From assembly GCA_965644315.1 (NCBI GenBank), contig CBFFRQ010000018.1:620001-684000 (forward strand): DNA of 64,000 nucleotides. The letters are read 5' to 3'. Every line of letters starts with the position of its first letter. Within the stretch, counting starts at the first letter, position 1. Below are positions 14,982-37,041 of the stretch, piece after piece. The DNA comes from Caecitellus pseudoparvulus (lineage: Eukaryota > Protista > Bigyra: Bicosoecida). Below the pieces are notes generated by a model. It was not told the DNA's origin. It did not search any database and saw only the letters and a program-made list of their open reading frames with translations. A program made the translations under genes and the position numbers.

Positions 14982-15644
14982 CTATCTGGCGCTCCACGCG
15001 CTGTGGCGCAGGGTGGGCGGACTGTGGTGCTCCGCACACGCTGGCTGGTACATGTCCAAGTCCCCCACGAGGACCTGTTCAGAAGCTTCATCAGGGGACT
15101 GGCAGAGGCGCTGGGTGAAACGCGCGGGCCTGTTGCACGGCCCGGAGGCGGTGCCTTTCGTGCAGGCCGCGGCCAGGCGATGGGCGTGTGTGTGCAGGCC
15201 AGCCACCTGCCCAACCGGCAAGTCTTGCAGAAGCTTGAAAACGTCTTCCGTTTGCCCGAAGGGCTCTCCCTTGTAGTCATAGTCAAGGCCCGCCAGCAGC
15301 AAGGAGTGCTGGCAACTTGGCTGGAGCAGCAGCTTCGCGAATGGCAGGAGGTCAGGGAAGAACTGGGCTTCGTCCACCACAAACAGGACCGGGTGGGACG
15401 CACGCAGCGCCGCCCGGGCGGCAGGAAGCAGCTCTTGTGTCGTTTGTGCTGGAAGCTCCAACCCAGCTCTGGATCGAATGCTCGTCGTGGCTCCTGCCCA
15501 GCGCGTGTCCAGCCCGCTCTTCAGGCCAAGCACCGTCGAAAAGCTGGGACCCAGCAAGGCCGCGCCAGCGAGCAGGGCAGTGGATTTTCCGGAAGCCATG
15601 GGCCCTGTAAACAATGCCACACTTCGGTGGCTCGCGGAGCTCAT
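14982..15644 (-). CDS. TK1: Thymidine kinase (TK1 family)
   Basis: P-loop GPMASGKST, DTR, SR, Walker B VDEAQFF, AGLDYDYKGEPFG, and a C-terminal lasso/Zn region (FTQR...VGDLDMYQPAC). Confidence 0.88.
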   Translation of the reverse strand: MSSASHRSVALFTGPMASGKSTALLAGAALLGPSFSTVLGLKSGLDTRWAGATTSIRSRAGLELPAQTTQELLPAARAALRASHPVLFVVDEAQFFPDLLPFAKLLLQPSCQHSLLLAGLDYDYKGEPFGQTEDVFKLLQDLPVGQVAGLHTHAHRLAAACTKGTASGPCNRPARFTQRLCQSPDEASEQVLVGDLDMYQPACAEHHSPPTLRHSAWSAR

Positions 15645-15846
15645 GCTGAATGGTCAGTGCAGCGTTCACAGGTGGCGCAGAGTGACCCTTTATGGTCCCG
15701 GAAATCCTGCAATTTCCGCAGAAATACTGTGCGGCACTGACTCCCACCCAGGGGCCATGCATTTGACAGATCTTAAGGCAGCACAGAACAGATCACGCTG
15801 TGTACACACAATGCTGGGCCATCTGGGTGGAGAAAGATTGCCCGGC

Positions 15847-16444
15847 TCACCGAATCGACTCAGGCTGCAAGTTGTCCTGCCTCATGCGCTGTCGAAGCTC
15901 CGCGGCCGTGTCTTCAAAGAGCGCAGCTTCGCGCTTACGTTGCAATGCCTGCGAGGGGCGCAAGAACGTTGGCTTTCAGCAGGGCCCTGTGCAGCCCCTC
16001 ACACGCAGTGCACGCACGTGCAACTTTGAGATGATTTCCTCCCGCTCTTCCTCCAGCTGCAGTCTAACATTTGGGGGAATGGCAACTGGCACCACTTCTC
16101 CATGGCGCTCCCTCTCCTTGAACTCGTTGACCATGTTATTCACCTGCATCCAGCACGTGTCGAGGCAGGTGGGTGTGCCCTGACACGCACTGCTGGCCAC
16201 CTGAGCCCACTTGCCATGGAGTCGTGCTCGGAAGCCCGCACCATCCAGCCGATTGCAATTCCTGCCGGGAGCATCACCATGCCTATGAAAAGAGGACAGT
16301 CGATTGAATCAGGACACCGCCTCAGGGGCCGAAGCAGTGCTTAGAGCTGCGCAATGACCACCCCCGGCACTCACCGACAGCAACCAAATACCGCAGCTGA
16401 GGGCTGGCCCGGGGAATGAATGCTCTGATCCACTCTGAATTCAT
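15847..16444 (-). CDS. Small single-pass membrane protein with coiled coil (about 120 aa, 3 introns including one GC-AG)
   Basis: Inferred spliced product MNSEWIRAFIPRASPQLRYLVAVGMVMLPAGIAIGWMVRASEHDSMVNNMVNEFKERE...LEEEREEIISKLHALQRKREAALFEDT...PESIR*. Confidence 0.55.
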
Positions 16445-16582
16445 GGTTGCCAGGAGAGCGAGCTGAGCTTCCGGGTGACATGTCCCGCCCTATGCTCCTG
16501 CTAGGGAGCCGGGGGTGTTCTCAAATGTGTGCAAACACCGTGCATTGCCGGCACCCGCCACGTAAGCTGCAGGCAAAGCACT

Positions 16583-19249
16583 TCACAGACCATTCCATTC
16601 GTCATCATCAGTTATGTCCCCTGCATCCATGGCAAAGCCAGTGCCAGCACTTGTGGCTGCTGGTGCAGCTGCAGCTGCCGCTGCAGATTGCTGGATGAGG
16701 TGCTGCCGCCTTGAATCCACTGCTGCCTGCGTGTCGGCCGCCGCAGAAGCAGCTGCTGGGGCATCCGCAACAGTCGGTGCGGGGGCACTGGGGGCTGCCA
16801 CAGCCCGGGCCGCCTCTGCCTCTCTGATACGAGCTGCCCGAGCTTCATCTTCAGCCTTGATTGTTGCGTCAGCAGCCGTTCGTTGTTCCAGCTTGCTGAA
16901 CAGGGTCTGGTCCAGCGCCGCAGTGCCCGCTTGCGCCGTCCCTGCCGCATCGGTGGCATCATCCCACCCATCCATGTCAAAACGGAACTCATCTGGCTCG
17001 AATGTGTCTGCAGCAGGCGCAGGTGCAGGTGCGGGGGCAGGGGCGGCTGGCGCTGGTGTCGGGGCCAGGTCCAGGGCATCATCCATAGCTGCTGCTAGCC
17101 CTGCGCCTGTCTCCGCCGCAGGAACCGGAGCCGGCGCTGAGTGTGCACCCGCTGGGATGCCCAAAGCAGTCGCGTACTGGGACATGCTGCTTTCACTACT
17201 GAATGGCTGTGCAGCGGGGGTCGGCTGCAGAGCTGCCGCCTTGGGAGGGGGCAGCTGGGCTGCCGCCCGCTTCGGCGCAGGTGCAGGAGCCGACGAGCGC
17301 CGAGAAGAGCCCGATGAGGTGGACTTCTTGGCCGGTGTGCGCTGCCGCTTTCGGGGGGCGCGCTTCTTGGGAGCATCGACGTACGGCACCGCCTTACCCA
17401 CGCATGGGTTGACATACTGCTGCAGGGCGCGGAGGGTGTCCGTGTCCATGGACGCCATGTCCAGCTCAATTTCCCCCGACTCCGGCACTTGCATGCGCTG
17501 CCGGACAAGGCGGACCACCTCCTCCATTTGGCTATCATTCAGTTGACCCACGTCGTTCGCCAGCTCTTGTTGTTCGCGCATGCTCAAGGGCTTGTTTGAG
17601 AGAACTTTGCCCGGCTGAGGCTGCGGGGCATGCGCGGCCGCTGGAGTGGTAGGCGTCGCAGCACCATTGTTACCAGCCACCATGGCTTGAAACGTGCTGA
17701 ACATGGTGGCCAGTTGAGAGGGGTCAGGTGGCCCATTGCCACCAACGCTGCTCATCATAGCCATCATCATGGCCATTTGCTGAGGGTCCATGCTGCCAGC
17801 CGCGGCCTGAGGAATGGAGGAGGGGAATGCTCCAGCGAGGGGTGCGGAGGCGAACGTGCCGCCAACAGATCCCGGCATGCTGCCTCCGTGCCCTGGGAAG
17901 CCGTCTCCACGGGCTTTCTTCGCAGAGGCCTGGGCTGCAGCCTCCTCTTCTCGCGCAGCACGCTCCCGCTTGCGGGACTTGGCATCGGCAGCAGCCTTGG
18001 CCTTGCGGGCCTTCTCTGCCCACTGCTCTTTGAGCTCTGCCATCTTCCTGCGGAACACTGCCTGTTCTTGCTCGGCCGCGGAGCGAGTGGGTGTGTTAAC
18101 GGGGTTGTACAGGATGGCGTTGCTGTAGATGAGCTCCATATCACGCTCAAAGTCTTCTGGGCCCTTGTAGTCGCCCCGCTTGATCTTGTCCTTCACTGTG
18201 CCATAGTCCATGGGGTGCTTGACGATGGTGAAGTAGTCAGGGATGTTCAAGGCCTCGGGGTCCACGGGCTCAGCAAAGAGGAACGCCTGCTTGGACTTGG
18301 ACATGGACTCCAACACGTTGAAACAGGCCCGGATCTCAGCTGTCATATCTGAGGAGAAGCCGATGGGCTCAGAGAGCCGCTTAGGAGCACTGCGCCGCCG
18401 CTGGGAGCGCGGCGCCGGAGAGAACTCCCCAGGGGATGGGCTGCGCCGGGGAGCTGCTGTCTTGTGCTTGGGCGGCATGACTTCGCCTTTCTTGTTTGGT
18501 CTGTTCGATGCGCGCATCATGGAGTACAAGCGCACCATGGCCATGTCACCGCTCGCTGGTGAAAACCACCCACGGAGTTGGAAGTCGCCATACCCATTTC
18601 GCCCTGCGCCGCGCAAGCCCGCCACAACGCCCGCAGACTCGGGGGGTTTGGGCGCGTCCACTGGCACCGGCCCCCCGAGCGCCACTACGTTTTCCTTCTC
18701 AAGAATTGTCAGGGTTTGAGTCGGGGCGGCTAGTTTGAAGTTCCCTGACACTGTGAAGATTACACCCGAGTGCTGTGCCCACTCTTCCGGCGTAGTGGGG
18801 CGCTCCAGCATGGCCTTGTCTCCCTCGTATTGGAAGGGGGACGTGACAACATCTCCTTGCACCATGCTCCACTGCCCCACCATGGAGGGCTTCCCCGCTG
18901 CATCCCACACCAACTTGCCGCTCATGTACGGTTTGACACCTGCCCGCTTCTCGTCAAATGGTGCATGCTTTGAAGGCGCCGCCAACGTGCTGATCAGCGC
19001 AGCCACATGCGCTGGCCAAGGCGCCGTAACAGGGGGTGGGCGTGCGATAGAGCTCCCCGCACTTGCTGCAGCGGGAGCGGCGGTCCCCGCTCCTGGGGCA
19101 GGGAGCGTGCCTGCTCCGCTTCCGGCGGATGAGGGGCCCGGACCACTGGTTGCCTGGAGTGGCTGCGCACTTGCTGCCGCAGTGGGCTGAGTAAGGGTAC
19201 CTGCAACGGTGCTGGGGGCTACTGGAACTGATGTGCTCTGGCTTTCCAT
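16583..19249 (-). CDS. BET-type bromodomain and extraterminal (ET) domain protein
   Basis: Bromodomain FLFAEPVDPEALNIPDYFTIVKHPMDYGTVK...NAILYN and ET domain LSMREQQELANDVGQL...EIELDMASMDTDTLRALQQYV. Confidence 0.9.
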   Translation of the reverse strand: MESQSTSVPVAPSTVAGTLTQPTAAASAQPLQATSGPGPSSAGSGAGTLPAPGAGTAAPAAASAGSSIARPPPVTAPWPAHVAALISTLAAPSKHAPFDEKRAGVKPYMSGKLVWDAAGKPSMVGQWSMVQGDVVTSPFQYEGDKAMLERPTTPEEWAQHSGVIFTVSGNFKLAAPTQTLTILEKENVVALGGPVPVDAPKPPESAGVVAGLRGAGRNGYGDFQLRGWFSPASGDMAMVRLYSMMRASNRPNKKGEVMPPKHKTAAPRRSPSPGEFSPAPRSQRRRSAPKRLSEPIGFSSDMTAEIRACFNVLESMSKSKQAFLFAEPVDPEALNIPDYFTIVKHPMDYGTVKDKIKRGDYKGPEDFERDMELIYSNAILYNPVNTPTRSAAEQEQAVFRRKMAELKEQWAEKARKAKAAADAKSRKRERAAREEEAAAQASAKKARGDGFPGHGGSMPGSVGGTFASAPLAGAFPSSIPQAAAGSMDPQQMAMMMAMMSSVGGNGPPDPSQLATMFSTFQAMVAGNNGAATPTTPAAAHAPQPQPGKVLSNKPLSMREQQELANDVGQLNDSQMEEVVRLVRQRMQVPESGEIELDMASMDTDTLRALQQYVNPCVGKAVPYVDAPKKRAPRKRQRTPAKKSTSSGSSRRSSAPAPAPKRAAAQLPPPKAAALQPTPAAQPFSSESSMSQYATALGIPAGAHSAPAPVPAAETGAGLAAAMDDALDLAPTPAPAAPAPAPAPAPAADTFEPDEFRFDMDGWDDATDAAGTAQAGTAALDQTLFSKLEQRTAADATIKAEDEARAARIREAEAARAVAAPSAPAPTVADAPAAASAAADTQAAVDSRRQHLIQQSAAAAAAAPAATSAGTGFAMDAGDITDDDEWNGL

Positions 19250-20388
19250 GGTACGCTGCTAGGTCTAAGGGTACTCGAGCACAAAAGCTGTGAAAGCACG
19301 GAGGAAGGCGGTGCAAAGCTGCAGCGCCCCAACGCAAATCAGGAAACGAGCCCTCAAACGTGTAGCTAAATCACTGAATGTGCCTATGCACAGGCACATG
19401 CGCCGGCCTGGCTCCGGGACACGCCAGCTTGCCGTTGCTCAAACGGCGCCGTTAGAGTCCGCACTGCATCACAATTCCGCACACCACCACTCCTGCTGCA
19501 GACGCACGCTGCAGGCTCCCTTTGAAGCCCTGGCACTAATCAGCGACAGAAAGGCACACAACATGAACACACCTACTCCTGTGAGAAACATGCACCGCTG
19601 AGCTCAGCTGCGGAAGGTCGCACACGTGCCAAGTTCTGCGTGCTGACGGGCAAGCCCAGGGGAGCCTGGCCCGGGTCAGGAAGCAGGAGGACGGGTGGGC
19701 TGCCAAGGCAGCGCCGGCTGCTCAACTATTGGGTGGAGTGTGCTCGTGGCTGCCCCCGGGGTGCAAACATGTCTTCAACATTTTCGCACCCCACATTTCG
19801 CTCGGGCGATGGGTTGTAGCGGCGGGGGGCTTCGGCATGCGAACGCCACAAGTTTGCATCATTCACGGGACGCATTTATGAACACCTACATCATCGTTTG
19901 CCGTGCACGCTGCCATCCCGGACGGGGCAGTCACTTCCAAGACGCGAACCTTTGACAGACTTGTGATTTGCTACGTGAGTACATATCATTGTTTCAGCGA
20001 TGCTCGCACTTTCGGGCAGGCTTGCTGGACACATCCAACTTCCGCACCCCGCCCGGCTTTGTGTCCTGCTGCCCGGTGCCCGGTGCCCTGCACCAGAGTC
20101 GAGCAGTCAAACTTGACCGCTAGCGAGTTTATTGCTTGTCTGTTGCCACCAGTGTGAAGTAGCGTCGTGAGGCGCCACCACTGGCAGCTGCAGGCAACTT
20201 TGGAGCTGCCCTGCCTGGCTCTGGCTCTGGCGCATGTCTGTCGCTCTGCCCAGGGTGTCCGCGGCTCTTGTCGGGCAGCAACGCGCGGCCAATCTGCCTT
20301 TCTTCTCTCAGAACCCCGCACCGTGCCCGCACTACAGATCCGGAGCTTCGAGTGCCCCTTTGCCCTCTCATCCCTCCAACCCTTCACA

Positions 20389-20805
20389 ATGGCCGCCGCC
20401 GAGATCATCTGGAGCGTGACCCGCAAGTCCAACGCCTTCCGCGTGAAGCGCAACGGCCTGGACCTGTCCCGCGAGCCAGTGAACGTCACCAACAAGCACT
20501 CGTACAAGACCTCTGGCTTCGTGCAGAAGTCCTTGAGCGTGGCTGCCTCTGCTGACGACAAGAAGATCAGCGTCGTCCTGCCCTCCACCAAGTACGCTGC
20601 TGCCCCTGCCAAGGCCATTCACTCCGTGGGTGTCTCCAACAACGTCGCTAAGGGCAACAAGACTGTGAACGCAGTCGCATGGAAGATCGCCGGCCGCCCT
20701 GACCTGCGCAACGCCGCTCTTGCCCGCGCCACCCGCCTGCACAAGGTGAAGGTGGGCAGCAAGGTCTACAAGCTGCGCCAGCACACTCGCCGCACCCAGG
20801 CTTGA
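20389..20805 (+). CDS. RPL28: 60S ribosomal protein L28 (eL28)
   Basis: EIIWSVTRKSNAFRVKRNG...LSREPVNVTNKHSYKTSG...RPDLRNAALARAT. Confidence 0.92.
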   Translation: MAAAEIIWSVTRKSNAFRVKRNGLDLSREPVNVTNKHSYKTSGFVQKSLSVAASADDKKISVVLPSTKYAAAPAKAIHSVGVSNNVAKGNKTVNAVAWKIAGRPDLRNAALARATRLHKVKVGSKVYKLRQHTRRTQA

Positions 20806-21062
20806 GTACGCTTTTGAGTCCATGGCTCGGGACCGGGCGTGGGGTGCCGCGTAGGCCACTGCACAACGGACACACCAGCAATTCAACAGACCTGTCAACA
20901 TTGCGCACTGAATACGCTGGCGTTATATCCTGCAAGCTCTGCGACCCTCGACTTGCCGCAGTGTAGGGGTGGCGTTTGAGCAAAACGCAGCAAAAACGCT
21001 GCATGCACCGGAACTGGGCGCTCTCCCTGCCCAGGCACCCCCTGTCGCAGGGCATTTCAGGC

Positions 21063-24000
21063 ATGCGAATCTGGGTTGCTGCACTGGCAGTTGCCTCGCT
21101 CGTGTGGGCCGCTCGTGGCGCATGCCCACGACATTGCTCAGGGCATGGCGTGTGTGGCGTAGGCAGCACATGTGCTTGCTCTCAAGGGTTCACCGGTGCT
21201 GATTGCTCACTCCGTGAGTGTCTTTGGCATGAAAACCTGCCGTCATAGCCAACTTGCCTTGCTGTGCTCGTATGCTCCCTTTGCCACCTCCTCAGGCCGG
21301 TGTGACAATGGCACGGCGTGGGCCGCCAAATCAAGGAGCAGCGACAACTTTGGCTCTGACTCAGCTCACCGAAAGGTTGAGTGCAGCGGAAACGGCATAT
21401 GCGATGCCAGCCTCGGCAGGTGCAGCTGCTTTCCTGGCTTCGAGGGCGTGGCTTGCCAGACAAGTAAGCTGCGTTGGTGCGCTGACTTGGCTGGCGTCCA
21501 ATTTCCGCACCCTTCCTCCGCTGCCCTCAAACACAGTGGCCTGTCCCAACGCCTGCTCGGAGCGGGGTTCCTGTATCTCTCTTACGACAGCCGGACGGCT
21601 GTATGGACCCGATGGTGGCCCACCGGACATGGATGGTGCCGGGCCCGCTTACGGGGTGGACTCACCGTCCAGCGGAGTTTGGGACGCCTCAGTCATGAGA
21701 GTGTGCGATTGTGACTGGGGATTTGCCGGTGCAGACTGCTCAGAAGGTGGGCATTCCCTTGAGCACTGCTTGTCCAATGCCTGACCAAGCCCCAACTACC
21801 ACTGCACCTCTCCGTTCTGCTTCGCAGTGCTCTGCCCAGTGGGAGATAACCCCTTCACTCAATCTCAGCAGCAGCTTGCCTTGCGCTTGGACCTCGATGA
21901 TGCAGGTACAGACCTGACAGGGACACCTGGGTTGCAGTTCTCCTTGAGGCTGCTGGGGCACCCTTCTGGGCACGTCGCGTTCAGCGAGGGCGCGTACGCT
22001 GGCACCACGTTGCAGCGAGAGGCATTTGCGGATGCGATGGAGGCTGCCATAGAGAGTAGCTTGCCAGTTTCAGCCGCCACCGTGCTGCCGATGGGCAGCG
22101 CCGGATCACAGCACAGCTATGCGGTGTTGCTCACGTTTGCGACGTCGCCGTTCTTCAACAATCTTCTCCTGAACATGGCAGCTCCCTCTGCAGGCTCGGT
22201 GACTTGCACGTTCTCTGACGTTCTGGAAGTTGAAAGTGCAGCCACGTGTTCAGTGTCTGCCTTGGATGTTGGCAAGGTTGTCGTCTCAGGTTTGAACTCG
22301 GCAAAGCACACGTACCGTCTGGCGGTCTTCCAGCAGCCAAGAAGTGCCCCGGCCACGGTCGTGGTGAGCGTCGATGCCGGCCCGTACATTACAGCCTCCC
22401 CATTCACAATGAGTGCAAGCGTGCCAGAGGACATCTCCGTCTTTGCCCCCGGAGCTCCTGCGGGCGATGTGACTGTTCTGTTTCCTGAGAGTGTTGGGCA
22501 CACACTTGGGGCTGTCTGGGAGGTCGGGCCTGCACTGGATGACACTGGGGCCGACTCCACATACGTGATCAAACCGGGCACCCGCGAAGTGCTTCCGTGT
22601 GGCGGTGTCGGAACATGCGACCATGGTACTGGTTCCTGTAGGTGCCCTGCTGGAACTTCTGGGCGTGCTTGCAGCGCACTGGATCTTGCGAACGAGGACG
22701 AGCCATCGTTGCCCATTCACGACGTGCTCGCTGCTGACCCTGCCTTTGATGGAACAATCATGAAAGTGCGCTCGACGCGTCCATATGGGTCCGATTTCAA
22801 GTTTTTTGAAGTCTCTGCTGCGGATCAGCCCCCCGCCCTGACTCTATTTGGCAACGGGATGCTTGAGACGAGGGACATCAGAGCAACTGGCTCCGCAACA
22901 GTGGGCAGCGGGGGGCTCATTGTGGATAATGATGGCATCACCATCACAGGAGGGGGGCTTGTGCTCCGAGATCACTCCAGTTCCAATGACCTCCATGTGC
23001 AGGATGGCCTAGTGCGCTTGAGCAGTGCGACAACAGCTGAGGATCATGTCGTGCTTCGCAGCTCTGCATTGACGGCTGCGGGCAAGTCTATGTTTCTCGT
23101 GCAAGGCCCTCCCTCAGCGAGTGTGAATGCCTTGCTCTTGGAGCAACTGGATGGGACCGACACTGTGAGTATTGATGGCACTGGCAACTTCAGGGCGCTC
23201 ATCGGAGATGCAGAAGTCTCAACTGGAGACCTTCGGGTTCTGCAGGGGCACTCGCTGCTGAACAATGACGCAGGCGTTGGCGCCAGCATCAGTGGGACAA
23301 CTCTGGGGGCAGATATCAGCAGTTCGTCAGTGGGTACTGGACTTGATGAGGGCACGCTCCGCGTACGTGCCGAGCATGCGGCGTTTGGTGGATCTGCTCT
23401 CATGGTGCAAGCCAACCGTGAGGGAGACACAGCGTTCAATTTGGTCCGGGTGTCTGCAAACACCGCAACAGCATCGGAAGACTACCTTCAAATTCGAGGA
23501 GATGGGTTGTTGCAGGCATTCAAGGGTGGGCAGGTCAATGAAGGATTCACAGTGCATGATGGTGGCCTTGACGTTGCTGATGGGGATGCGCGGGTTGACG
23601 ACCTGGTTCAGACAAACAAGGCAGGGGGTGTGTCCGTACTGGGCAGTTTCACCATGCCTGACGACCCTGGAGATCCTGCCAGCTCAGTTAGCATCGACAT
23701 CCTTGGCCAAGTTTCCGTCTCCTCCCAGTCTGGAGTGGACATCTTGGGCTCCACGGCAAGCGCAGGGTCCAGCCTGAGCAGTGGCAGCGGTGCACCGATC
23801 ACCATCAGAGGCGGTGAGAGCACAGGGATGGGAAGGCCGGCAGGTTCTGTTTCCATTATTGGTGGAGCGTCGTCCAGTTCCAGCGATACAGGGTCCGTGC
23901 TACTCTCCACAGCTGACGTAGGCGGGACTTCTGGCTCTGCATTCAGCGGCGACATCGTCCTCGCAACAGGGGGCATTCCAGGGTCTGGACCCGCAGCCTC

Positions 24001-27000
24001 CGGGGCTGGGAGCATCATACTATCGGGGGGAGGTGATCTTGCTCCCGGTGGCTCAAACTCTGCGGGGGCTGTGAGCGTAGTGGGTGGGTTTGGCACGGAC
24101 AGTGCGGGAGGACAGGTGGTGCTATCTGCAGGAGCCAGTACTGCAAGCACAGGTGCAACAGGAGTCGGTGGTGCACTTTCTCTGTTCTCGGGAGAAGGCC
24201 ACTCTGCTGGTGGCGACATTACCATTCGTGCTTCTCGAGCAGCTGCCGGAACTTCGCAAGGAACCGTCAGCCTCCAGGCATGGGATCCGACGGCCGGAGC
24301 TGGGGACACGGGAGAGTACGTGCCATTCGTCAAGGTGGAGTCTGACGGGGCACTTTCACTGAAGACTGCAGAAGGCAAGGACATAAGTATACAGGCAGTT
24401 ACTGATGTCGCACAGCCAGTCGCTTCTGTGCTGCTGGAGAGTGGTGCACATGGCGGCCACGTACAGCTCTCCACGCCCGCGGGCGCCGTGTCCATTGCTG
24501 CGCAAACGGGCATTGACGCCACAGCCCAAACGGGAGCAATCTACTTTTCGGCAGGGAGCCTTTCCGATGCCTCCGCTGGGTTTCAGGCAGAGGTCCTAGG
24601 GGACATCAGCTTGAGCGCGGGGGTGGACGGGGTTGGCTCACTCGCACTCTCTGCAGGCTCATCTCTCAGAATGGAAGCCAACTCGGGCGACATCTCCTCA
24701 TTGAGCTCCACAGCGTCGACTTTCATTCTCGTTGGAAGTAGTGGCAGCTCGACCACTAAGTCGCTGACGCTAGGGGCGCACGCCAGCGACACCTCCGGCG
24801 CCAGCGTCTCAGTTCGAGGCGGAGTTGGCGCCACTGTCGGAGGCGCTGTCAGTGTTGTCGCCGGTGCGGGGTCTGGAGCAAGTACCGATGGAGGGGCTAT
24901 TCTCTTGTCCTCAGGTCAAGCTGGGGGGGCCTCCTCGATGGGGGGGGCACTGAGCTTGCTTGCTGGTCACGGGTCTGCAGCTGGCGCCGGGGGAGCGGCG
25001 TGGCTGCAGTCGGGGTCTGCCACATCAGACGGGCTGGCAGGCGGCGAATTGCACGTCCAGGCAGGGGAGGGGTTCAATGGTGCTGGTGGGTCTGTTTCTA
25101 TCGCTGGAGGGGGCACTGCCGGCCCAGGCGCTGTGGGAGACGGTGGCTCGGTCACCGTGCGAGGCGGTGGAACGACGGACTCTGCATCTAGCCTGGCGAA
25201 CGCTGCAGGAGGAAGTGTATCTATCATCGCGGGGGCTGGTACCACATCAGATGGAACCGTGCAAGTACAAAGCGCCAGGCAGGCGGGCTCTGCAGAGTTT
25301 GGATTGCAAGTGAGCTCAGGCTCAACAGTTGTGGGTGGGGGGAGCATTAGCGTTCTTGCGGGCACTGATTCCACCGTCTCTGATGGCAAGCTTTTCCTCG
25401 CTTCCGGCCTCGGCCAAGACGTCCACGTTCACGGGGCTTCGTGGCTCGCGGGTGCCGTGGGAGACATTGAGCTGTCAGGTGGGGGGGGGGGTGCCCTCGG
25501 AGGTTCTGTAAGCCTGATTGGCGGTGGGAGCACCACCGTTGCTGGGCACATTTTCCTGTCCGGTGGCACGGCAAGTCTGGGAACGGGGGCGGCGGGCGGA
25601 GTGAGTGTTTTGGGTGGTGATGCTGTGGTTGTAGATGGTCCGGCAGGCTCGCTGCTCCTCTCAGGGGGTGAAGGAACGGGCGGTGGCGCCGGGTCAGGAG
25701 GCGGACATATCTCAATAGTTGCCGGCACAGCTGCCGGTAGCACTGCTACGGCAGTTGGCGGAAACGTTGTTGTGAAAGGCGGCTTCAATACTGGAGTTGC
25801 ATCTGGGCGGCAGGCAGGCAATGTGATTCTCAGCACTGGAGAAGATTCAAGTGGGGGCGGCCAGCATGGAGCGGTGCAAGTAAAGTATGTTGGAGATGTC
25901 ACTGCCATCGAAGTGACGCACCAGAGCACTGTCGTTGAAGGGCGCACGCTAGAACTGGGGTCGACGGCCGAGGATGTGCTGGTACGCTCTGCTGATGTCG
26001 TCGGGCGAGGTATCAAAGTGCATGCCGGGGGGGCGGCGACGCCACCGACTCGAGGTGGGTACGTCGACATTGCCGCTGCGCCAGGAGACGGCGTACCAGG
26101 TGGGGCCGTGTCCATCACGGCTGGAAGCTCAGATGCAGGAGGGGCTGCAGGGGGGAGGGTCGTCATTACGTCTGGCACAGGTGTCGCACCGGGAGCAACT
26201 TCTGGTGGGATTGCTCTCACAAGCGCAGACTCGGGGGCCAGTGGTAGCTCGGGAGACCTTACCGTTGCTTCGGGCAGTGCTGCAGGCGCTGCGGAGGCGA
26301 GCGGAAACATCATCCTTCAAACAGGAAGCGCGTCAAGCACCGCAGCTGCAGGCCATGTGTCTGTCCTTGCGGGTGTGTCCACTGGGGGTACAGGGGGCTC
26401 AGTGTTCCTTTCAGCGGGCGCTGGAGCAGTGGATGGCAGCGTTTCTGTACGAGATGCACAAGGGGAGGATGTTGTGGTTGTAACCTCTACATCCTTTACG
26501 GTACAGCAGCAGCAAGTGTCTTTCTCCACCACCAGCGGTCCACTCTCAGCAGCTACCCACACTGGTCAGACGCTGAGCATCCTTGGGGGAGGCGGTCCCG
26601 CGGCAACGTCAGGAGGGCACGTCATCATCCGCAGCGGCGCGCACACTTCCGGAAGCAGTGCAGGTTCCATTAGCATCACAGCTGGTGATAACTCTCACTC
26701 CGCCGGGACACCCTCTGGAGGCCACGTTGTCCTGGCGGGAGGCGCGTCAACCGCGCCAGCTGCGACCTCGGCGGAAGGCGGGTCAGTCTCGCTGCTAGGA
26801 GGAAGTGGTGTGCACCAGGGTGGAGGTGTGCATGTGGCTGGTGGTGGCTCATCAGGGCACATTCAGGCTGGCCACGTCACGGTGGTCAGTGGGGAGGGGA
26901 GTGGAGCAGGCGCGGCAGGGCACCTGTCTCTCATTGCTGGAGGCGCCGTGAGCGGGGAAGCTGGCAGCATCGTGCTGAGCGCAGGGACGTCAACCTCCGG

Positions 27001-30000
27001 TGCGAATGGAAGAGCCCACATTTTCTCCGGGACGGGTCGGAAGGTGGTGGAGGTTTTTGATGGGAGCGTCACGCTGAGCTCTGGCGAAGTTAGCATCGCC
27101 TCCGACACGGGTGACATCACCATCCAAGCGCAGGCAGCACAGGAACTGAAGCTCATCGGAGAAATCGGGACCGGAGCAGCTGGCGGGGGAATCTTGATGA
27201 AGGCTGGGAACAGCGACCTTAGCGCGGGACATGTTTCGATACTCAGCGGGGACAGCTCCCACGCGACGGGTGCCGGGCCTCTGGTGCTCTCGGCCGGAAC
27301 TGCGACGGCGTCCAATGCCCAGGGCGGCGACATTCACATTATGGCAGGTGAGTCCACCAGTGCTGTTGATAGTGTGGGTGGTCATTTGGTGTTGAAGGGT
27401 GGCAGGTCAGGCGCCAACGGTGTCCTGGGGCCAGGTGTATCTGCTGGGCATGTGAGCATCGTGGGTGGCAGCTCAGTGCACGACGCCCCAGCTGGGCGAG
27501 TCCTCATCGCTGCAGGTGAATGTGAGGGATCAGGGGTGCCCACGTGCAATGGTGGAGATGTCATTCTCAGTGCAACACAGCGCGCTTCGTCCGGAACACT
27601 GGATGGCAAAGTGCAGCTGTTCTCCGGCGACGGAACCTTGGCGTTTGAAGCAGACTCTCTGACACACTCCACAACTATTCATGAGAGTCATATTCAAATC
27701 CATGGAGGACAAAGCGTGTCCATCATGTCAGATGATAGCGCGTCGTCCCTGCCAGGGAAGGTGCTGCTGAGCAGTGGGGAAGGAAGCGCCCCCTTCGGAG
27801 GGGGTCCCATCGAAGTGCTAGGCGGCAGAGGGGGTGGAGATGGCGGTTGGGCAGCGCTGAGAGGTGGTCCATCTTCCACTGCTATTGGAGGGGCAGTGTC
27901 TGTCACTGCCGGTGCTGGTAGCACTGCTGCCGGCCGCGGTGGGCACGTACTTGTGCAAGGCGGGCAAGGCAGCGCGTCGAGCAGTGGGGGTGGCGCGGTC
28001 AGCATCCTGGGAGGCGAAGCGCTTGGGGGGAGCGGTGGTGACGTCATTCTACGGGCTGCTACTGGTGTGGGAGCAAACGGCGCTATTCGCGCGCAAGATG
28101 CCGGGGGCAACCTCGGCCTGCTCGTTGAAAATGGCCAGACGCAGGTTGCAGGCACACAAACGCTCATCCGCCCTCTAAATGGAGATGTGATGGTCAGAAC
28201 GGGCCAAGGGCACGACATTGCTCTGGATTTCTATGATGCAACCGCTGGTGAGATCACGATGACAGCTGGAGGCAGTGCTGCTGGAACTGCCGGCGGTGTG
28301 ACCATCACGGGCGGCGAGGCGACGAGCGCTGCAGCAACAAGCGGCAGCGTGGTGCTGCAGCCTGGCCTCCCCGGGGCTGGCTCATCGGGCTCTGTGATCC
28401 TAAGGAATGCGCATGGGTCGGCTGCGTCTGCACTTGTGCTGTCACCCGGGTCGACCCTTCTTTCGTCGGATGCCAGCACGCGGGTGGCCTCTGCGCCTGG
28501 CTCCCCAGTTACCATCGCTGCCGGTGGTGGGACAGGCACAGCGAGCCTTGGAAGTCACCTGATATTTGAAGCAGGGGGAAGCTCAGTGGCAGCAGGTTCA
28601 GTATCGATCACTGCTGGGGACGGGGGCAGCGCGGGAGGTAGCGTTGACGTTTGGGCCGGAAGCGGAACGACACCTGGCCGAGTCCGTTTGCTGGAAAGCG
28701 ACGGCTTGTCCGCGTCCGTGACCGTGGAGGATGGTTTGACAACCATAAACGGAGATGCAGTCCTCATTGACTCTGCAGGTTCTGGTGCAGGCCAGGTAAG
28801 CATTACCACCGCCGCGTTGCCTGGCAGCGTAGTGTCCATTGAAGCAGGTCGAGGGCGCCTGGGCTCCAATGGCGGTGCAGTGGCTATACACGCCGGCAAG
28901 AGCACGTCAGGCGGGGTTCCTGCTGGTGCAGTACTGATCGAAGGTGGCGAGGCAGCAAGCGGTGATGTGGGAGAAACAGGGGGCGCTGTGACATTGTCAG
29001 GCGGCGCGTCCACTGCAGTCGGAGGTCCGGCGGTGGTCAGCGGCGGCGACTCCACCACTGACTCAGGAAGTGGGGGGCATGTATCCTTACTCTCCGGAGC
29101 TGGCGGAAGGGACGGGGTGGGCGGAAACGTCATCTTGCTCGCTGAGGGGGGAGCAACATCCCCTGCCAGTGGCAATGGAAATGGCGGCCATGTCTCCATT
29201 ACTGCGGGCGCTGGCACTGGGACAGGCACAGCGGGACTCGTGACCATTAGAGCCGGCGCTGATGGCACTCCAGCTGGCGGAGCCTTGCGACTCCAATCAG
29301 GTGATGGCTCGAGTTCGCAGCTCCAAATGACGAACACGGAGGTGTCCATAAACACGCCCACGGCCACGCTGCAGACCTCCACAGGAATCTTGAGACTTCA
29401 AAGTGCAGAGGGGAGCTATGTGCGCCTTATTGCAGGCAATGAGGCCACTGGAGCAAACGGTGGAGATGTCGAAATCCTTTCTGGAAGGTCCACATCGGCG
29501 GCTGGGGGCGCGGTAAGCGTTGTGGGAGGTCCGTCCACCACAGCTGCAGGGGGGGCAGTGGCATTGGCAGGAGGGCAAGGCGCGGGATCGGGTGGACAAA
29601 TCAGCATGACTGGTGGGAGTGGCAGGGGAGGTGGGGAACACGGAGGAAATCTCGCTCTGAATGGTGGGGCGGGCGCAGGTGGAGCCGAAGGTGGAGATGT
29701 CAGCATCACATCCGGTGCCGCGGCAGGCGCAGCACGATCGGGCAGCATCTTCCTTTCCACTGCCGCAACACTTGGGACAGGAGATACTGGGAATGTCGTT
29801 CTTCAGACGGGTTCGCCAACAGCTGGTCATTCGGGGCACATGAGCATCTTGACTGGCGTTGCGAGCGCCGGAGACGAGGCAGGCAACATCATGTTGCAGC
29901 CTGGTCAGGCAGACGCAGTTCCACAGCACGGGAAAGTCGTAGTGCTTGATGCTGCAGGGACAGTTGCTTTGAGCGTGAGCAGTGGCACGACCGAGGTTTC

Positions 30001-33000
30001 TGCGTCAAGCCTGTTGAAGCTTGGCTCGACACTGCACGTTGAGGCGACTGCAGGTCTCGCAGGGCACGTGTCCATCGTGTCTGGATCTACAGGCACCGTG
30101 CTGCTCTCCAGTGCTGGAACACCTGGAGGGACAGCTGGACCAATCTCCATCGTGCCTGGTGCTGGAGTTGTCGGGGGCAGCCTGACAATAGGCTCGGGAA
30201 ACGGGGATGCCCCCACAGGCAACAGCGGAGAGGTGGTTGTCAAAACAGGCACAGCTACTGGAAATGCTGGCACACTTCTTCTGAGTGGAGGGCACTCGAC
30301 GTTTGCCGGTGCTGGCCCTCTAGGGGTGGCGTACTCTGCTGGAACCGTGAGCATTCTAGGGGGGGCAGCAGCAGACAACCCAAACTCGGGAGCGAACCTG
30401 GACAGTGCGGGGGGCGACATTGTCCTGTCTGCAGGTTCGGCGGCTGGTGACGAAGCCAGTGCAAGGGGTGGTCATGTTTCTATCCTCTCAGGGCAAGGCA
30501 CAGCTGCAGGGAGTCTGGTCTTGTCGGCCACCGGTGCTAGTGGGAACGCTGTCGTTGCCTCGCAGGCATCCACATCCATCGGCGGCTCTGAAATACTCCT
30601 GAGTAGTGCAACGGGCCCAGTGCAAGCCAGGTCTGTGGGGGGGCAAGCTGTGTCTATCTTGGGTGGTGGTGGCCCTGCTGGGGTCGTGGGGGGTAATGTG
30701 GTTCTGGAGGCCGGCGGCCATGGATCTGGGTCGGGAGGGGACATCGAAATAAACGGTGGATCCTCCTCTGCGACGGCATTCAGCGGAGGAGACGTCAGTA
30801 TCTCCGCTGGATCTTCCAGCGCGGTGTCAAGTGGGACGGGCGGTGCACTTGCTTTGCAAAGTGGCGATGGTTCTGGCACAGGGGCAGCGTCCGGGCCGGT
30901 GTCGCTAAAGAGTGGAAATGTCGCCACCGGCACTGTTGGGGAGGTGCTCATTTCTGCTGGGACAGCAACTTCGAGCGGAAGTGCTGGAAGCATCAGCCTT
31001 GTCGCCGGGGCTGCCCCCACTGCTGGGAACGACGGCAGCATCATCTTGAGTCTTGCAGGTGGCGTTGCAAGGGACGGGGCAGTGTCCATTCGTACGCCCA
31101 GCACCACTGTCTTTCAAGCAGAGCATGCCTTCACGACTGTGCAGGGACCAAAAGCTGATATCGTGACTACAGATGCGGGTGACGGTGCCCTGACACTCAC
31201 ATCAGCAGCCTCACAGCCTGTCCGCATCCATGGAGGGGGAGGGCTCAGTGGGACTATCGGAGGAGCAGTTGAGCTTGTGGCTGGGGCCCATGCCTCAGCC
31301 GCGGCCAGCGATGTGTCCATCTCTGGCGGGCGCTTTACAGGCACAGGGGCCTCCGCCGGAGGCGCAGTTGTGTTGCGTGGGGGTGCTGCGACAACTGGCA
31401 GCACTGGTGGCTTTGCCACGCTTGGAGGAGGAACGGGAAATGCCGGCGGGGATGCAAAGGTCGAAGGCGGCGCAGGAGTTGTGGGATCAGGGGGCACCGT
31501 ACAAGTCGAAGGCGGCACTTCCCCGTCCCAGGGCGGTGCTGTCGACGTTCGAGGTGGCTCGGGAACGGGTGGCGGGCTTGGAGGTCATGTACGACTCTTT
31601 GCTGGTTCGGGCTCGACAAGCGGTGACGTTCAAGTGCACCGAGTGGCTTCCCATGACGCGAGCACGCTCGCTTTGGAAGTATCCGACCTCAGGACTACCC
31701 TGGCGGGGCAGCATGCGCTGATCCAGGGACTGAATGGTGGCTCCGCTGAGCTCCGGGGCCCTGAACAGGGCTCTGTCCTACTCTCCGTCGTCGACACCAG
31801 CGCAGGTGGTGCTGGCCAAGGCATCAAACTGGCTGCGGGCGCACGCAGTGGCTCATCAACCTCTGGTGGGACCCTCGAGCTGCTAGCGGGCAGCGGGGCT
31901 GGCCACGCTTCTTCTCAGGGAGGAGATCTGATCGCTTCGGCTGGATCAAGTGAACAGTCCAGCGGCGGTGTGGTCGAAATCACTGGTGGGGCTGGTGGCT
32001 CTGGCTCAGGAAGTGGACAAGGCGGAATAGTGTCTATAACAGGTGGTGCTGGAGGCTCAGCGACAGCTGCCGGGACACTCAGCGCGGGGCATGTGCTTTT
32101 GCAAGGAGGGCCGGCGTCCAATACCGCGAACGGCGGAAGCATATCGCTTCTTGCCTCTTCGGGGCACAGCTCTGGAAATGGTGGCTCTGTCTTGGTAGCT
32201 GCAGCCCCGGGTGCAGGTGGAGATGGCACAGTGATCGTCAGAACGGGTGCTGGGCGGGATGCAGTGCTTGTTACTTCGACAGACCTCTCGTTCGCCAGCG
32301 ACACCATCAGCATTCAAGCGGATGGCGTCAGTACAGGCACAGTCACACTGTCATCAGGTGGCGCTTCGGCTCTTTCGCTGCTGGCGGGCCCTGGAGCACC
32401 AGGGGTCAACGGTGGCTCTGTTTCCATCATGGCTGGGAACAGCCTCGGTGCTGATGCTGCAAGCCATGGTGGCAGCTTGCAGCTGAATGCTGGAGCTGGC
32501 AGTGCTGCGAACGACGGCGGCCAGGTTGCACTGGAGGCTGGTTCTGGACGAAATGGGGGGGCGGTGTCCATTCAGGCGGGAACTGGCACGAGCACGGCAG
32601 GTCAAGTGCATCTCTCCGCAGGGTCTGTGGGAGGTCGATCTGGGGCAGACCTGGAACTGGGTGGCGCGCATCCCGGAGACGCGAGCGACGGTGATATCAC
32701 CTTGCAAGCAGGCGGTGGGGGCGGAGCAGCCGGTGGTGACATGTTCTTGCTGACTGGTGCAGGCTCCAGTCAAGGCTCCTTCATGTTGTCGATTGGATCT
32801 GAGACCACTGCCCGCATCGCTGCAACTGAGTCATCCACCGCCATTGGTTCCAGCACGATTGGTGGTGGTCTATCTCTCACATCTAGGGACTCTCTTGGGA
32901 GTACGCTTGCTCTGAGCGCCGGCTCAAATAGCGGTTCGTTTGGATCTGCCGTGAGCCTCACTGCAGGGCGGGGATCTGGCGCAGTGGATGGCGGTAGTGT

Positions 33001-33817
33001 AAGCATTTTAGCAGGAAATGGACACGCTGGCTCTGACGGCGGAGACGTTGAACTGCGGGCAGGCTCTGGTACTACCAACGGCCAAGTACGAATGTTGGAT
33101 GGTGCTGGCAGCACAGTGCAGGCTTTCGGCAGCGACAGCTGGGCTGTAACAAGCCAGGGAACGGTCTCCATTTTCAGTCACGATGGGGACGGCATAAACA
33201 TAGCTGCAGGTCAATCCTCTGGGGTCACCCCAAGCACTGGGGGGGGAGTTTCGCTTGCAGCTGAAGATGGCAGCACCCTGGGCGGCTCTATTTCCTTGCA
33301 AGCTGGCAACAATGGAGGGTCCGTCGTGATTGCGCCTGGATCGTCGGGTTCAGTTGAGGTAAAGTCCTCTGATGGAACTGCAGCCATAAGAGTGAAATCC
33401 GATGACACCCTTGAGTTTTTGAAGCCCATTACGTTTACTGGTGGTGCTGAGCTATCTGCCAGTGGTCCCATGTCGACTCACGGTGTGCTGAAAATCCCGT
33501 CTCAAGAGACTCCAGGCACGGCATACACCATTTTCGATGTCGCCACCCGAGGCGCGCATACCGCCCTTTCTCCCTTCGATGTCAGAAACACGCTTGTGCT
33601 GCGCATATTTAACAATGGGCCAAGTGGTGGGTCTGAGAATGTCCACCTGCTGTGTGATGATGGGCAGTTGTTGTACGTGCTGAATGAGGACGTGGACACG
33701 CTCGTTATCAGCCGCCAGACATGCGGAGCACCTCTGGCTGTGCACGACACCTTTACGTATAACGTAGCACCGACTTCTATCGGTTTGTACTTTTGTAACT
33801 GTCCTTCTGTGCGATGA
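21063..33817 (+). CDS. Giant secreted protein (about 4,170 aa): N-terminal mastigoneme-type EGF module plus long Gly-rich beta-repeat fibre
   Basis: Signal peptide [19 protein letters not shown]. Three small exons encode [32 protein letters not shown] and [14 protein letters not shown]. They splice into a 3,996-codon exon (CPVGDNP...[16 protein letters not shown], then many GGxVx[IL]xxG repeats). Confidence 0.85.
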
Positions 33818-34515
33818 GGGAGCACGTGGAAGCCCTCACAGTTCACGGGTCGAGTCCGATGGGGGTCTACTGCTTGGATCACCCACAGCCCTGCATTAAG
33901 TGTGCGGCTGATCTTCTGGTGTAGCTACCTCCCTCTCCATACTGCGACCTCCCTACAGTGCACTGAAGTGCATGTGGCTCTGCTTGGAAGGCCGAAGCTT
34001 TTTCTGAGGATGTTGGTCGCCCAGTTGACCTTGGCTGCACGTCAGGCAAATCGGAAGGAAGAGCTATTTCTCACGAGCATAATCAACACCACACTACGCC
34101 CCAAAGTTTCGAGCAGTGGCCACATCTTTGTTCCCCCCAGCTCTGCTCCAGCATCTCTTGGCAGCAGGCAGTGTTCGTCCGCGGAGCAGGACCAAGGGCT
34201 GCGCACTCCCTCTGATCTGGCCAATCTCAGAGACTGCGAGAGGTTCTTCCAAAGCCCACGGAAGCAGTTTTGTCGCAAGCGTGCAAAGCAAGGGATGATG
34301 CAGTTAGTATGGAATTCATTTCCAAGGTCTGTTGCGCGGCTAAGGTCGATTCCTTTGCAGCGGGGCCTGGCACGCATACGTGCGTGCTCTGCGGAAATTG
34401 GTGCACACTCCACGCTCCCCCCTCGCCTTCTGAGCCACTTTGCAGGTAACACAAAGCGGAGCACCACCATCGCCTGTCATCATGTCTGATGCTAGGTCTG
34501 CCTTTAGCGGTGTCC

Positions 34516-37041
34516 ATGACCGACTGTCCATCCAGTCTCTCCTTCATGACGCACGTGAGTCGCACAAGTGCGTGTGTGGGGCAGCTGGAGGCGCTGCCGC
34601 AACGCATACGTCACTCCACTATCGGATGGAGGTCAGTCCGCTTGCTGGCAAAGCCCCGCAACGCTGAACACGCCCGCTCTTTCTCAGCTCAAGGCAGCAT
34701 TGTCATGCTCACCAACGTCACATCACAGCAATCAAAACTGGTGACTGCAGCCTCTTTGTCAAAGCATGTGCTCAAGCGGGGTGGGCGAAAGCCATTCGTC
34801 GCGCACGCATTCCTTCGTGGCACACCGATCGCCTCGCATGAAGCCCTCCAGCCACTTTATCGCATGTGCATGTCTGCATCCGGGAGTGCCACACTTGGTG
34901 CGCAGCCCGGACTTACAGAGGGTGGCGCTCCTAAGTCGGCCCACTCGTTGAGAAAACCGTTGCCGACCTCCTACGCTAAACGTGACCCTCCCCAAAACAG
35001 CAGTCTTGTTGATGTCTCACAGGGTGGCGAAGCGACGATAGGTTGCGCTGGGCCCAGTGGTTTGCTTGATGACGGCGCACATTCTGCGGGCTCAGTTGCC
35101 AGGCAGGGCTCCGGAGTGCAGCCCGTTCACATGCCCTCAGCGCGCAACTTGCTGCCTTGGCACCCTTCTTGCATGCTGTGGGGTGAAATCGCCATGGCAG
35201 GTAGCTGTCTAGACTTCAACCTAGCACCGTCTGGCGCAGGAACCTGGCGCTATCTTTCATCTGGACAGCAAGTTTGGTACCTGGTGCCCCCAACACCGAA
35301 AAACATGCAGCTCTTTGCAGAACAGATCAACGCACCAAGACATGCCCGCGAGGCACCGTTTGAAAAGCAAGCATCTCAGTGCTTTGTAGTGACACTTTCA
35401 GAGGGTCAATTGCTTGTTGTCCCGCCAGGTTACATCATGGCGTTCCGAACCTTGACATCGTCGGTCGGACTGGTTGGCCACTTCTTCAGCTTCAGTAGCT
35501 CACGGGACACCCTAGCGGCCCGCAGAACAATGTCATGCTTCCCTAAGCCCTTGTTGAAGCCCATGGAATTCCCCTTACAGTCAATTTTCTTGCGTGCTTT
35601 GCTCGTCAGCACTGTGCATGTGTCAAAAGCGGGGCATGAGAGCGTAGCCAGCACTGGCACAAACCCGTGCGCCCAAACGGGGCGCGAGAAGAATCTGTTG
35701 AAGGAGTTGGATGGAATGACTGTGGCATTGAAGTTCTTGTGTCAGTGCTCTGCGACGAGTTTGCCCGACGCCCTCCTCGCAAACTTGCATGCTTTGGGTC
35801 AAGAGCTTGAGGCGGCCACGACGCAACTCGAAGCAAGTGGTCTGGCTGATGGCGATCAAGCCTTGGAAGTACAGCAAGACCACATCCGCGGGCCACTTGT
35901 CCTCGGCTCTGGGGAGACTCGCCCCTGTCTGTCCCAGCTGCCCACGGCACACAGCATAAGATCTTGTGCAGGTGGCGAGCCGCAGCTGCCACACTCGACA
36001 GGCTTGCTCTACACCCGCCTCTGCTCGCTGGTTCACGAGGCAGCCCAGCACCTCGTGCTTTCCGAAGCGGTTGGTATCCGTGGGCAGGAGTGTGCAGCAC
36101 CTTCCCTGCGAGCCTGTTTGAAGCGCTCGCGGACGGCATCTCGTGGCTCGAAGGCGGAGGCGTCACGCGGGGTTCCCAAGCCACGGGAGGCGAAAGCACC
36201 CAGGCATGACTCCACAGATGTAGGGATCCCTGTTCCGGCGTTGCACAGAGCAGTTGCAAGGTGGCCCTCGCAGGCAGCGGCTCCACCGCAACCAGCTCCG
36301 CAGCAGGCATGGTCAGGGGAGCACAGGCGAGCTTGCCACATGTGTGGAAACATGCGCAAGCACAAAGTGCTTTGCACAGCATGCCCGCAAGTGTTCTGCC
36401 GAAAATGTGCCGTGAAATGCTACCAACAATGGGGCAAGGCAGCATTTGAAGGGCGCTGCCCTCACTGTGCCGAGTGGTGCTGCTGCGTTGCAAAGCAAGG
36501 GAAGCAGCCTCGCTGCCCTTGGGCGCCACAGTCTGTGTTGTCGCCTGGTACCCAACATGAAGGCAAGTCGGCATGCACTGGGCGCTGTATGCTCACCTTC
36601 CATTGCTACAAGAAATGCCCCACTGTGAAGGCCGGGAAAGCCGCCGCGAGCCGTGCCGCTCGGCTTCCAATGACGGTTGAGGAGGCAACAAGGAGCATGG
36701 AAGCTCGAATTCGTAGGCAGCAGGACTTGCTCAGTGTCTCTTCGCCCTCATTAGAGTTGGATCGGCTGTCACACAGCGGCGGCATCTCACATTCAAAGGG
36801 TTTGCCGGCTTTAAGTACAGCATCTGCCGCGGAAGTCGTGGAGCCAGCACATCAGGCAAACCAACCTTCCCTACCAGACCTTCTGCCCTCATTTCCCGAA
36901 CAAAGCGGGCCCGATGCAGTTGCATCCCGTATGTCCGGGGTGCAAAGCATTCCTGGGAGCCCTTCATTCCTTGACTTGCAATTCCAAGAAGCTCATCAGG
37001 CTGACTCTCCACTCAAGTGCTGGCTTTCTCCAGATGCATGA
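34516..37041 (+). CDS. JmjC-like (degenerate) domain plus C-terminal Cys-rich zinc-finger protein
   Basis: GSCLDFNLAPSG...SGQQVWYLVPPTPKN...TLSEGQLLVVPPGYIMA...VGHF aligns to the KDM2/PHF8-type JmjC fold. CHMC...CTAC...FCRKC...CPHC..CCC forms a zinc finger. The start is uncertain. Confidence 0.7.
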   Translation: MTDCPSSLSFMTHVSRTSACVGQLEALPQRIRHSTIGWRSVRLLAKPRNAEHARSFSAQGSIVMLTNVTSQQSKLVTAASLSKHVLKRGGRKPFVAHAFLRGTPIASHEALQPLYRMCMSASGSATLGAQPGLTEGGAPKSAHSLRKPLPTSYAKRDPPQNSSLVDVSQGGEATIGCAGPSGLLDDGAHSAGSVARQGSGVQPVHMPSARNLLPWHPSCMLWGEIAMAGSCLDFNLAPSGAGTWRYLSSGQQVWYLVPPTPKNMQLFAEQINAPRHAREAPFEKQASQCFVVTLSEGQLLVVPPGYIMAFRTLTSSVGLVGHFFSFSSSRDTLAARRTMSCFPKPLLKPMEFPLQSIFLRALLVSTVHVSKAGHESVASTGTNPCAQTGREKNLLKELDGMTVALKFLCQCSATSLPDALLANLHALGQELEAATTQLEASGLADGDQALEVQQDHIRGPLVLGSGETRPCLSQLPTAHSIRSCAGGEPQLPHSTGLLYTRLCSLVHEAAQHLVLSEAVGIRGQECAAPSLRACLKRSRTASRGSKAEASRGVPKPREAKAPRHDSTDVGIPVPALHRAVARWPSQAAAPPQPAPQQAWSGEHRRACHMCGNMRKHKVLCTACPQVFCRKCAVKCYQQWGKAAFEGRCPHCAEWCCCVAKQGKQPRCPWAPQSVLSPGTQHEGKSACTGRCMLTFHCYKKCPTVKAGKAAASRAARLPMTVEEATRSMEARIRRQQDLLSVSSPSLELDRLSHSGGISHSKGLPALSTASAAEVVEPAHQANQPSLPDLLPSFPEQSGPDAVASRMSGVQSIPGSPSFLDLQFQEAHQADSPLKCWLSPDA

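Follow-up and report, generated by a model that had tools for sequence, protein, structure and literature searches.

The gene at positions 21063–33817 (forward strand) of a 64,000-nucleotide stretch of the Caecitellus pseudoparvulus genome (contig CBFFRQ010000018.1, positions 620,001 to 684,000; the whole stretch is called the window below) encodes a 4,172-aa protein in which a head of the Mas (tubular mastigoneme) type is fused to a giant fibre that is very probably a homotrimeric β-fibre, as judged from its relatives and from structural models. This Mas-fibre fusion represents an apparently undescribed subfamily spread across the stramenopiles, and we favour, with modest confidence, the reading that the protein is secreted as a homotrimer and serves the tubular flagellar hair as an accessory subunit, with Mas heads that would join the tube and a thin fibre of 0.1–0.2 µm that would project from it. 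Tripartite hairs turn round the thrust of the flagellum, be it in the zoospores of oomycetes, the gametes of algae or the most common bacterivores of the sea. The proteins of the hair shaft are known and solved (9UFE), the role of the terminal filaments is unclear (PMC9310263), and in the literature searched we found no protein assigned to terminal filaments or base. Nor did we find there a description of a Mas-fibre or Mas-S74 fusion, although the 9UFE paper or other key papers on mastigonemes may mention one. The first-pass annotation of the window had regarded the architecture as uncharacterised, which agrees with this search, yet it is not a one-off.

The gene consists of four exons and three phase 1 GT-AG introns (Table 1), giving a coding sequence of 12,519 nt with a single stop. 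Three short exons lie upstream of a 4,010-codon open frame at 21785–33814, and as the closing EGF and the fibre sit in one exon, the fusion is independent of splicing. Two metagenomic orthologues, P0001 and P0003, are full-length and collinear with the window protein down to the last Cys at ~39% identity, and in both loci the same bromodomain and RPL28 genes precede the fibre gene. Both orthologues lack intron 1, so that the join of exons 1 and 2 can be read directly, and they carry introns 2 and 3 at the same codons as the window gene. The splicing of exons 1–3 to exon 4, on which the first-pass annotation depended, is thus supported by comparison of the genes. Positions 20300–25300 are contiguous in two independent assemblies (DNA contigs), and 17 of the 28 listed coding variants are synonymous and 11 missense. 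Database searches were run exon by exon or with intron-free relatives, while the joined translation was used for counts, alignments and the tree only, against sequences already fetched. Word-based homologue searches returned only one orthologue and one near-identical fragment, and nothing for the repeats.

The head (aa 21–458, 26 Cys) contains all the Mas motifs that had been listed in the first reading, and its order of three EGFs, CP.G.DP, insert and closing EGF is that of the Mas/Ocm proteins (PMC12223298). The signal peptide was called by eye and from hydropathy, the N-terminal 19-mer being the only strongly hydrophobic one (1.7; next 1.4). Over the whole protein, hydropathy gave no evident transmembrane or glycosylphosphatidylinositol (GPI) anchor signal, as there is no second hydrophobic segment and the C-terminus is not hydrophobic. 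The best PDB matches are mastigoneme chains throughout: the whole head of an intron-free relative aligns to a 366-aa 9UFE chain (E 2e-43), the full-length relative P0068 has PDB matches at E<=1e-3 only to 9UFE chains (best E 1e-44), and the first exon of the orthologue also matched 9UFE chains first. By sequence, the head is that of a Mas family protein. The genome holds about 20 Mas loci, of which exactly two carry the fibre, the window gene and a locus on contig G000:C79. Three ordinary fibre-less Mas paralogues are clustered ~15 kb upstream of the fibre gene (window 1,200–7,100) and served among the outgroups of the tree described below.

After the closing EGF the chain runs on for 3,712 aa, 57% of which are G, S, A or T, with only six Cys (2075, 2083 and four in the tip). 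The predicted long, almost Cys-free and anchorless fibre was therefore found as described, and so was the small Cys-containing tip, whose four cysteines are kept in both orthologues. We counted 89 matches to the pattern [GAS]Gx[VIL]x[ILV]x[AGST]G within aa 801–4000, versus 2.1 +/- 1.4 in 500 shuffles, mostly at a spacing of 14–19 aa, and the motif blocks are broken by spacers about every 190 aa. An HMM (hidden Markov model) of the spacer gave clear matches for only about a dozen units, some of them its own seeds, so that 16–18 units is an approximate count. No DNA or BLASTP self-similarity was found among the repeats, which are for this reason considered old; a recent tandem expansion is ruled out on the same ground. 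Neither PHROGs nor Pfam gave a match for fibre or tip. The fibre has 79 Asn and not one N-x-S/T sequon, versus 17.1 +/- 3.6 expected, the orthologue fibres have 2 versus 27 and 2 versus 31 expected, and most relatives tested are depleted as well. At matched motif positions, Asn with S/T at +2 was seen in 0/35 cases versus 173/413 (p 2e-8, pooled from three related sequences that are not fully independent). Judged by these counts, N-glycosylation sequons have been purged from the fibre by selection, which would make sense if the whole chain travels through the lumen of the endoplasmic reticulum (ER) and glycans hinder the packing of three chains. Together, the sequon purge, the signal peptide and a head rich in disulphides suggest secretion through the ER.

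The AlphaFold monomer of aa 425–784 (73 sequences; predicted local distance difference test score, pLDDT, 73) contains the EGF, three three-stranded meanders and confident extended segments without intrachain hydrogen bonds, and may thus resemble one chain of an intertwined trimer. For the last 483 aa the same pattern was obtained at low confidence (pLDDT 57; spacers 76–81). The PDB neighbours found with Foldseek and VIA are nearly uniform, namely Bdellovibrio Bd1334, T4 gp34, the streptococcal phage HylP, VgrG and sarcoglycans, almost all of them trimeric β-helices. Viral models in BFVD gave stronger matches (E to 2e-9), among them proteins of chloroviruses and tail fibres that bear a chaperone. 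The tip domain resembles phage proteins by language-model features and is β-rich at low model confidence. An intrachain parallel sheet was absent from both AlphaFold models, that of the last 483 aa being of low confidence, and no β-solenoid or RTX Pfam match was found; on these models the protein would be neither a single-chain β-solenoid nor an RTX β-roll (GGxGxD) adhesin. S74 domains are chaperone-proteases ensuring the trimerisation of β-helical spikes (PMC10769870). Since S74 is present in relatives, the confident strands are unpartnered within the chain and the fold neighbours are almost all trimeric β-helices, an intertwined homotrimer is more likely than a single-chain solenoid. Of the original proposal of a β-solenoid or β-helix fibre of the tail-fibre or adhesin type, the β-fibre of this type is supported and a single-chain solenoid has become the less likely form, and the proposed Foldseek comparison of the monomer models did return trimeric β-helices, although with weak PDB matches.

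The family was revealed by a search with an HMM profile of the neck (aa 461–834), which gave 157 representatives after clustering at 50%. Of these, 97 have enough upstream sequence to judge, and in 80 an EGF lies directly upstream of the neck. The members span oomycetes, ochrophytes, Cantina and Cafeteria, the named ones being from Aphanomyces, Pythium, Achlya, Saprolegnia, Plasmopara, Triparma, a chrysophyte, a pelagophyte, Cantina (fusion seen in a transcript assembly) and Cafeteria. Thus the survey of the Mas-plus-repeat architecture that had been suggested led, for every named member, to a stramenopile lineage with flagellated stages. Database labels of the members are hypothetical, EGF-like or Peptidase S74 proteins only. 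We reconstructed a tree from the EGF-core columns only, with a profile built from fibre members and outgroups from one genome, leaving out rows with <105 core residues as well as P0050 and C50. In it, all 24 fibre-bearing heads tested group into a single clade that excludes 11 fibre-less paralogues from that genome, with a support of 86/89 (Shimodaira–Hasegawa-like approximate likelihood ratio test/ultrafast bootstrap) that becomes 94/95 without the C79 sequence. One fusion early in stramenopile history would be the simplest reading of this tree. The C-termini differ: about 35 of 150 members have Peptidase_S74 at this end, in many cases with a coiled-coil-like tail behind it (Pfam above cut-off in 7/7 members tested), while the others, the window protein included, end in small β domains. 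Both the SDxRxK motif and the Pfam domain PF13884 (Peptidase_S74) are absent from the window protein and its C79 paralogue. Most members have fibres of ~270–900 aa (about 10–35 nm), and those with S74 have a median of ~540 aa (270–1,719), corresponding to 15–20 nm. As P0009, the closest short relative, has only 888 aa, the giant length is regarded as a lineage-specific expansion. Among the family matches P0069, P0127, P0128 and P0147 as well as P0125, P0136, P0141 and P0144, some possess a neck but no Mas head and a few of the weak ones look bacterial or phage-like, one of these with a PEP-CTERM-like tail; because of such matches the neck unit may have prokaryotic relatives.

The second Mas-fibre paralogue of the genome (G000:C79:157,500–167,652, + strand, ~3,300 aa) shares a long insert with Cafeteria proteins. 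Its distal tandem repeats are nearly perfect, its frame is broken once near 164.9 kb, and its tip domain differs from that of the window protein. Similar GG repeats make up a giant gene on G000:C20 (~196,000–276,900, − strand) and the whole of contig G000:C214, with open frames of up to 11,619 and 14,013 aa in one orientation and together >25,000 codons, whose frame breaks may be long-read errors in tandem repeats. It contains internal Peptidase_S74 domains (three motifs on C20 and two on C214), which ties the GG repeat to S74-type folding, and may encode a fibre polyprotein that cleaves itself. On C20, a signal peptide and a PSI-like Cys domain are encoded by small upstream exons, no Mas head was found for this gene, and its sequons are retained (19 versus 11 expected). 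On G000:C57 (104,232–115,997, − strand) a 3,922-aa open frame encodes ~17 near-identical 116-aa repeats, acidic cadherin-like domains and a ZU5-like stretch ending HFS, followed by a complete Mas module at the C-terminus; on the same contig (97,899–99,941, − strand) there is a C2H2 zinc-finger array of near-identical 29-aa repeats. With a Mas head on an unrelated giant stalk (C57) and a GG fibre on a non-Mas head (C20), both parts are modular.

For the assembly of the fibre we propose that the chain enters the ER, where three chains would intertwine into a triple β-helix, probably zipping from the C-terminal tip domain as suggested by the family architecture and the models; this tip holds the position taken by the self-cleaving S74 chaperone in many relatives. 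By homology, the three Mas heads would then be built into the tube alongside ordinary Mas/Ocm subunits, most plausibly as a few copies per hair at one of its ends, and the fibre would project as a thin filament of ~0.1–0.2 µm whose tip may serve in binding. The lineage of the window protein may thus have a short filament of the terminal or lateral kind; in most stramenopiles the subfamily would form a cap or spike of 10–35 nm. Taking 0.6 Å per residue as the upper rise, the 3,712-aa fibre would measure at most ~220 nm. Scaling from solved mosaic adhesive trimer (MAT) fibres of 142 Å for 370 aa and 95 Å for 334 aa (PMC10769870) predicts 105–140 nm. A bolder version, which we consider possible though doubtful, concerns the tripartite hair, a structure that defines the stramenopiles: its end caps or terminal filaments would be made of a Mas subfamily of ancestral origin, joined to a triple β-helix fibre of the virus type with an S74 chaperone. 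Length and tip would vary by lineage as in phage receptor-binding fibres, giving the hairs tips of specific binding, to bacterial prey for instance.

Several points weigh against placing the fibre on the hair. The terminal filaments of small open-ocean heterokonts measure 0.3–0.4 µm (PMC9310263) and the predicted length would fall below this, so that in the length comparison suggested in the first-pass annotation the fibre comes out too short. Nor, at 15–20 nm, can the fibres of the family at large make up the long terminal filament, unless they polymerise or nucleate other material. PPTG_14518 from the zoospore proteome of Phytophthora parasitica (W2PWT3; 812 aa, signal peptide, EGF-like, Gene Ontology term protein autoprocessing), matched by annotation only, is probably a family member; it is not flagellum-enriched (spectra 6/5/5/5 in cell bodies vs 1/3/9/5 in flagella), whereas known Mas proteins are 3–5-fold enriched. 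Its about 5 spectra, compared with 130–630 for PnMas1, fit a few copies per hair and give no positive support for a flagellar site. The six 9UFE chains all have 209–748 aa and none matched the fibre region searched, the individual PDB fold matches are weak (Foldseek E at least 0.02; VIA Z at most 5.6), and the model of the repeats reaches a pLDDT of only 57. Moreover, the Mas head may be a general anchor, since the GG repeat occurs without Mas and giant stalks of unrelated kinds bear Mas heads as well.

Taken further, this last point leads to a trimeric secreted fibre outside the hair, such as a cell-body hair, an attachment thread or a prey adhesin in the style of the Bdellovibrio MAT, with the Mas head reused as a general anchor or oligomerisation module. 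The giant GG-repeat gene of the same genome with its other head and internal S74, the varied extensions of the about 20 Mas loci and the distribution of PPTG_14518 speak for it, as do tips that differ between members like those of MAT adhesins and the body hairs of 0.2–0.25 µm in some stramenopiles. However, every Mas protein localised so far is a hair or hair-assembly protein, the Mas head is complete and conserved across the stramenopiles, and a protein without transmembrane or GPI anchor needs a partner. The non-Mas giant also keeps its sequons while the Mas-fibre family purges them, suggesting a different setting, and we regard a site outside the hair as rather unlikely.

We give still less weight to an assembly factor or basal piece, in which the trimer would align three Mas heads to nucleate the tube in the ER or would form the core of the tapered base tying the hair to the flagellum, without a free distal filament. 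A trimeric and probably low-abundance protein present in both cell-body and flagellar fractions (PPTG_14518) would suit this role, the short fibres of most members suit a cap or nucleus better than a filament, PnMas3 was reported to be active in development and not in the mature structure, and the tapered base of the Fucus hair is about 200 nm long (PMC2107633). Yet it does not account for a fibre that has expanded eight-fold in this lineage and whose distal tips vary, and S74 cleavage gives a free C-terminal end without a membrane anchor. An artefact or a non-functional fusion, be it by misassembly, unspliced exons or a decaying repeat frame, is very improbable and largely refuted. It is true that the splice joins are read from homology, and that the near-identical database protein P0002 ends at 1,223 aa after a G run, but closing EGF and fibre share one open frame, both orthologues are full-length and syntenic, independent assemblies span the junction region and the Mas-fibre junction is common to hundreds of relatives. 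The Mas-fibre subfamily is a specific, sequence-defined candidate for the hair end pieces, and because it probably exists in the genetically tractable Phytophthora the question of the end pieces is directly testable. As far as the predicted trimer holds, a eukaryotic supergroup would widely secrete trimeric fibres of the phage type, many of them bearing an S74 chaperone that cleaves itself.

Table 1: Features of the Mas-fibre gene, with positions in the window.
Feature	Position	Strand	Evidence
Exon 1: signal peptide (aa 1–19, 21063–21119) and first EGF of the Mas module	21063–21213	+	EGF_Teneurin match E 9e-9; orthologue's exon vs 9UFE chains E 1e-9 to 4e-15
Intron 1, 82 nt, GT-AG, phase 1, missing from both orthologues	21214–21295	+	Splice sites, orthologue comparison
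Exon 2: second EGF, AH..EC type	21296–21463	+	Six 9UFE mastigoneme chains are the top six PDB matches, E 4e-13 to 3e-8
Intron 2, 73 nt, GT-AG, phase 1, position kept in orthologues	21464–21536	+	Splice sites, orthologue comparison
Exon 3: split third EGF (CPN.CS ... WD ... C.CD)	21537–21746	+	
Intron 3, 81 nt, GT-AG, phase 1, position kept in orthologues	21747–21827	+	Splice sites, orthologue comparison
Exon 4 (whole)	21828–33817	+	
Exon 4 start, end of the Mas module: CP.GDNP motif, subfamily insert, closing EGF (aa 434–458, 22598–22672)	21828–22672	+	
Conserved neck/proximal fibre (aa 461–830), subfamily-defining: three three-stranded meanders linked by extended GG-hydrophobic segments	22679–23788	+	
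Distal fibre (aa 848–~4010): motif blocks of 4–8 GGxVxIxxG turns each, ~90 turns in all, β-meander spacers about every 190 aa, no N-glycosylation sequon	23840–33326	+	
C-terminal tip domain (aa ~4055–4172): small β-sandwich, four Cys kept in both orthologues, stop codon	33461–33817	+	

Upstream of the fibre gene (window 7,026–20,802) lie genes for a DEAH helicase, a proteasome subunit, MsrA, Cpn10 and thymidine kinase. On the orthologous contig the same housekeeping genes, such as the DEAH helicase, are found downstream of the fibre gene, while bromodomain and RPL28 keep their place. Introns, housekeeping neighbours and conserved synteny rule out a viral insertion. The RPL28 protein (window 20,389–20,802) falls into the same 90% cluster as a protein that carries the label Symbiodinium sp. 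KB8, suggesting that the KB8 assembly contains DNA of this or a related flagellate. Two open reading frames on the other side of the gene, at 34,489–37,041 and 44,304–46,106 (both +, 850 and ~600 aa), have no Pfam match and lie near genes for a MutS-family protein, an RNA methyltransferase and a rhomboid.

Compared with known systems, the window protein shares with the tubular mastigoneme proteins (Ocm, PnMas1–3 and the Sig family; 9UFE chains) the signal peptide, three N-terminal EGFs, CP.G.DP, a variable insert, the closing EGF and the lack of a transmembrane segment. The 9UFE chains in our alignments, however, stop at or just past the closing EGF where the window protein continues into its fibre, and its head stands in a separate clade with its own insert motif. 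Ocm4 of Ochromonas, a fine extramastigoneme filament protein proposed to form a filament on a tubular hair, is not known to carry an EGF module. The Bdellovibrio MAT fibres (PMC10769870) are, like the window family, secreted and combine a conserved N-terminal anchor and a β-helical fibre with an S74 chaperone or a swapped β-rich tip, and the MAT fibre Bd1334 is the top, though weak, Foldseek match of the window fibre. In contrast to them the window protein is eukaryotic, has an EGF/Mas anchor, is about four times longer and shows no detected sequence similarity, and its trimer and any adhesion are putative. The same predicted strand-and-meander layout is found in the triple β-helix fibres of phages and chloroviruses (T4 gp34, streptococcal HylP and S74-chaperoned tail fibres), whereas the window gene is an intron-containing nuclear gene among housekeeping genes and without a PHROG match; as the similarity to phage fibres is at the level of the fold only, a viral origin is not established. 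Thus the Mas head belongs to a known family, while the fused whole, although not a member of either group by sequence, would work like a MAT or a tail fibre.

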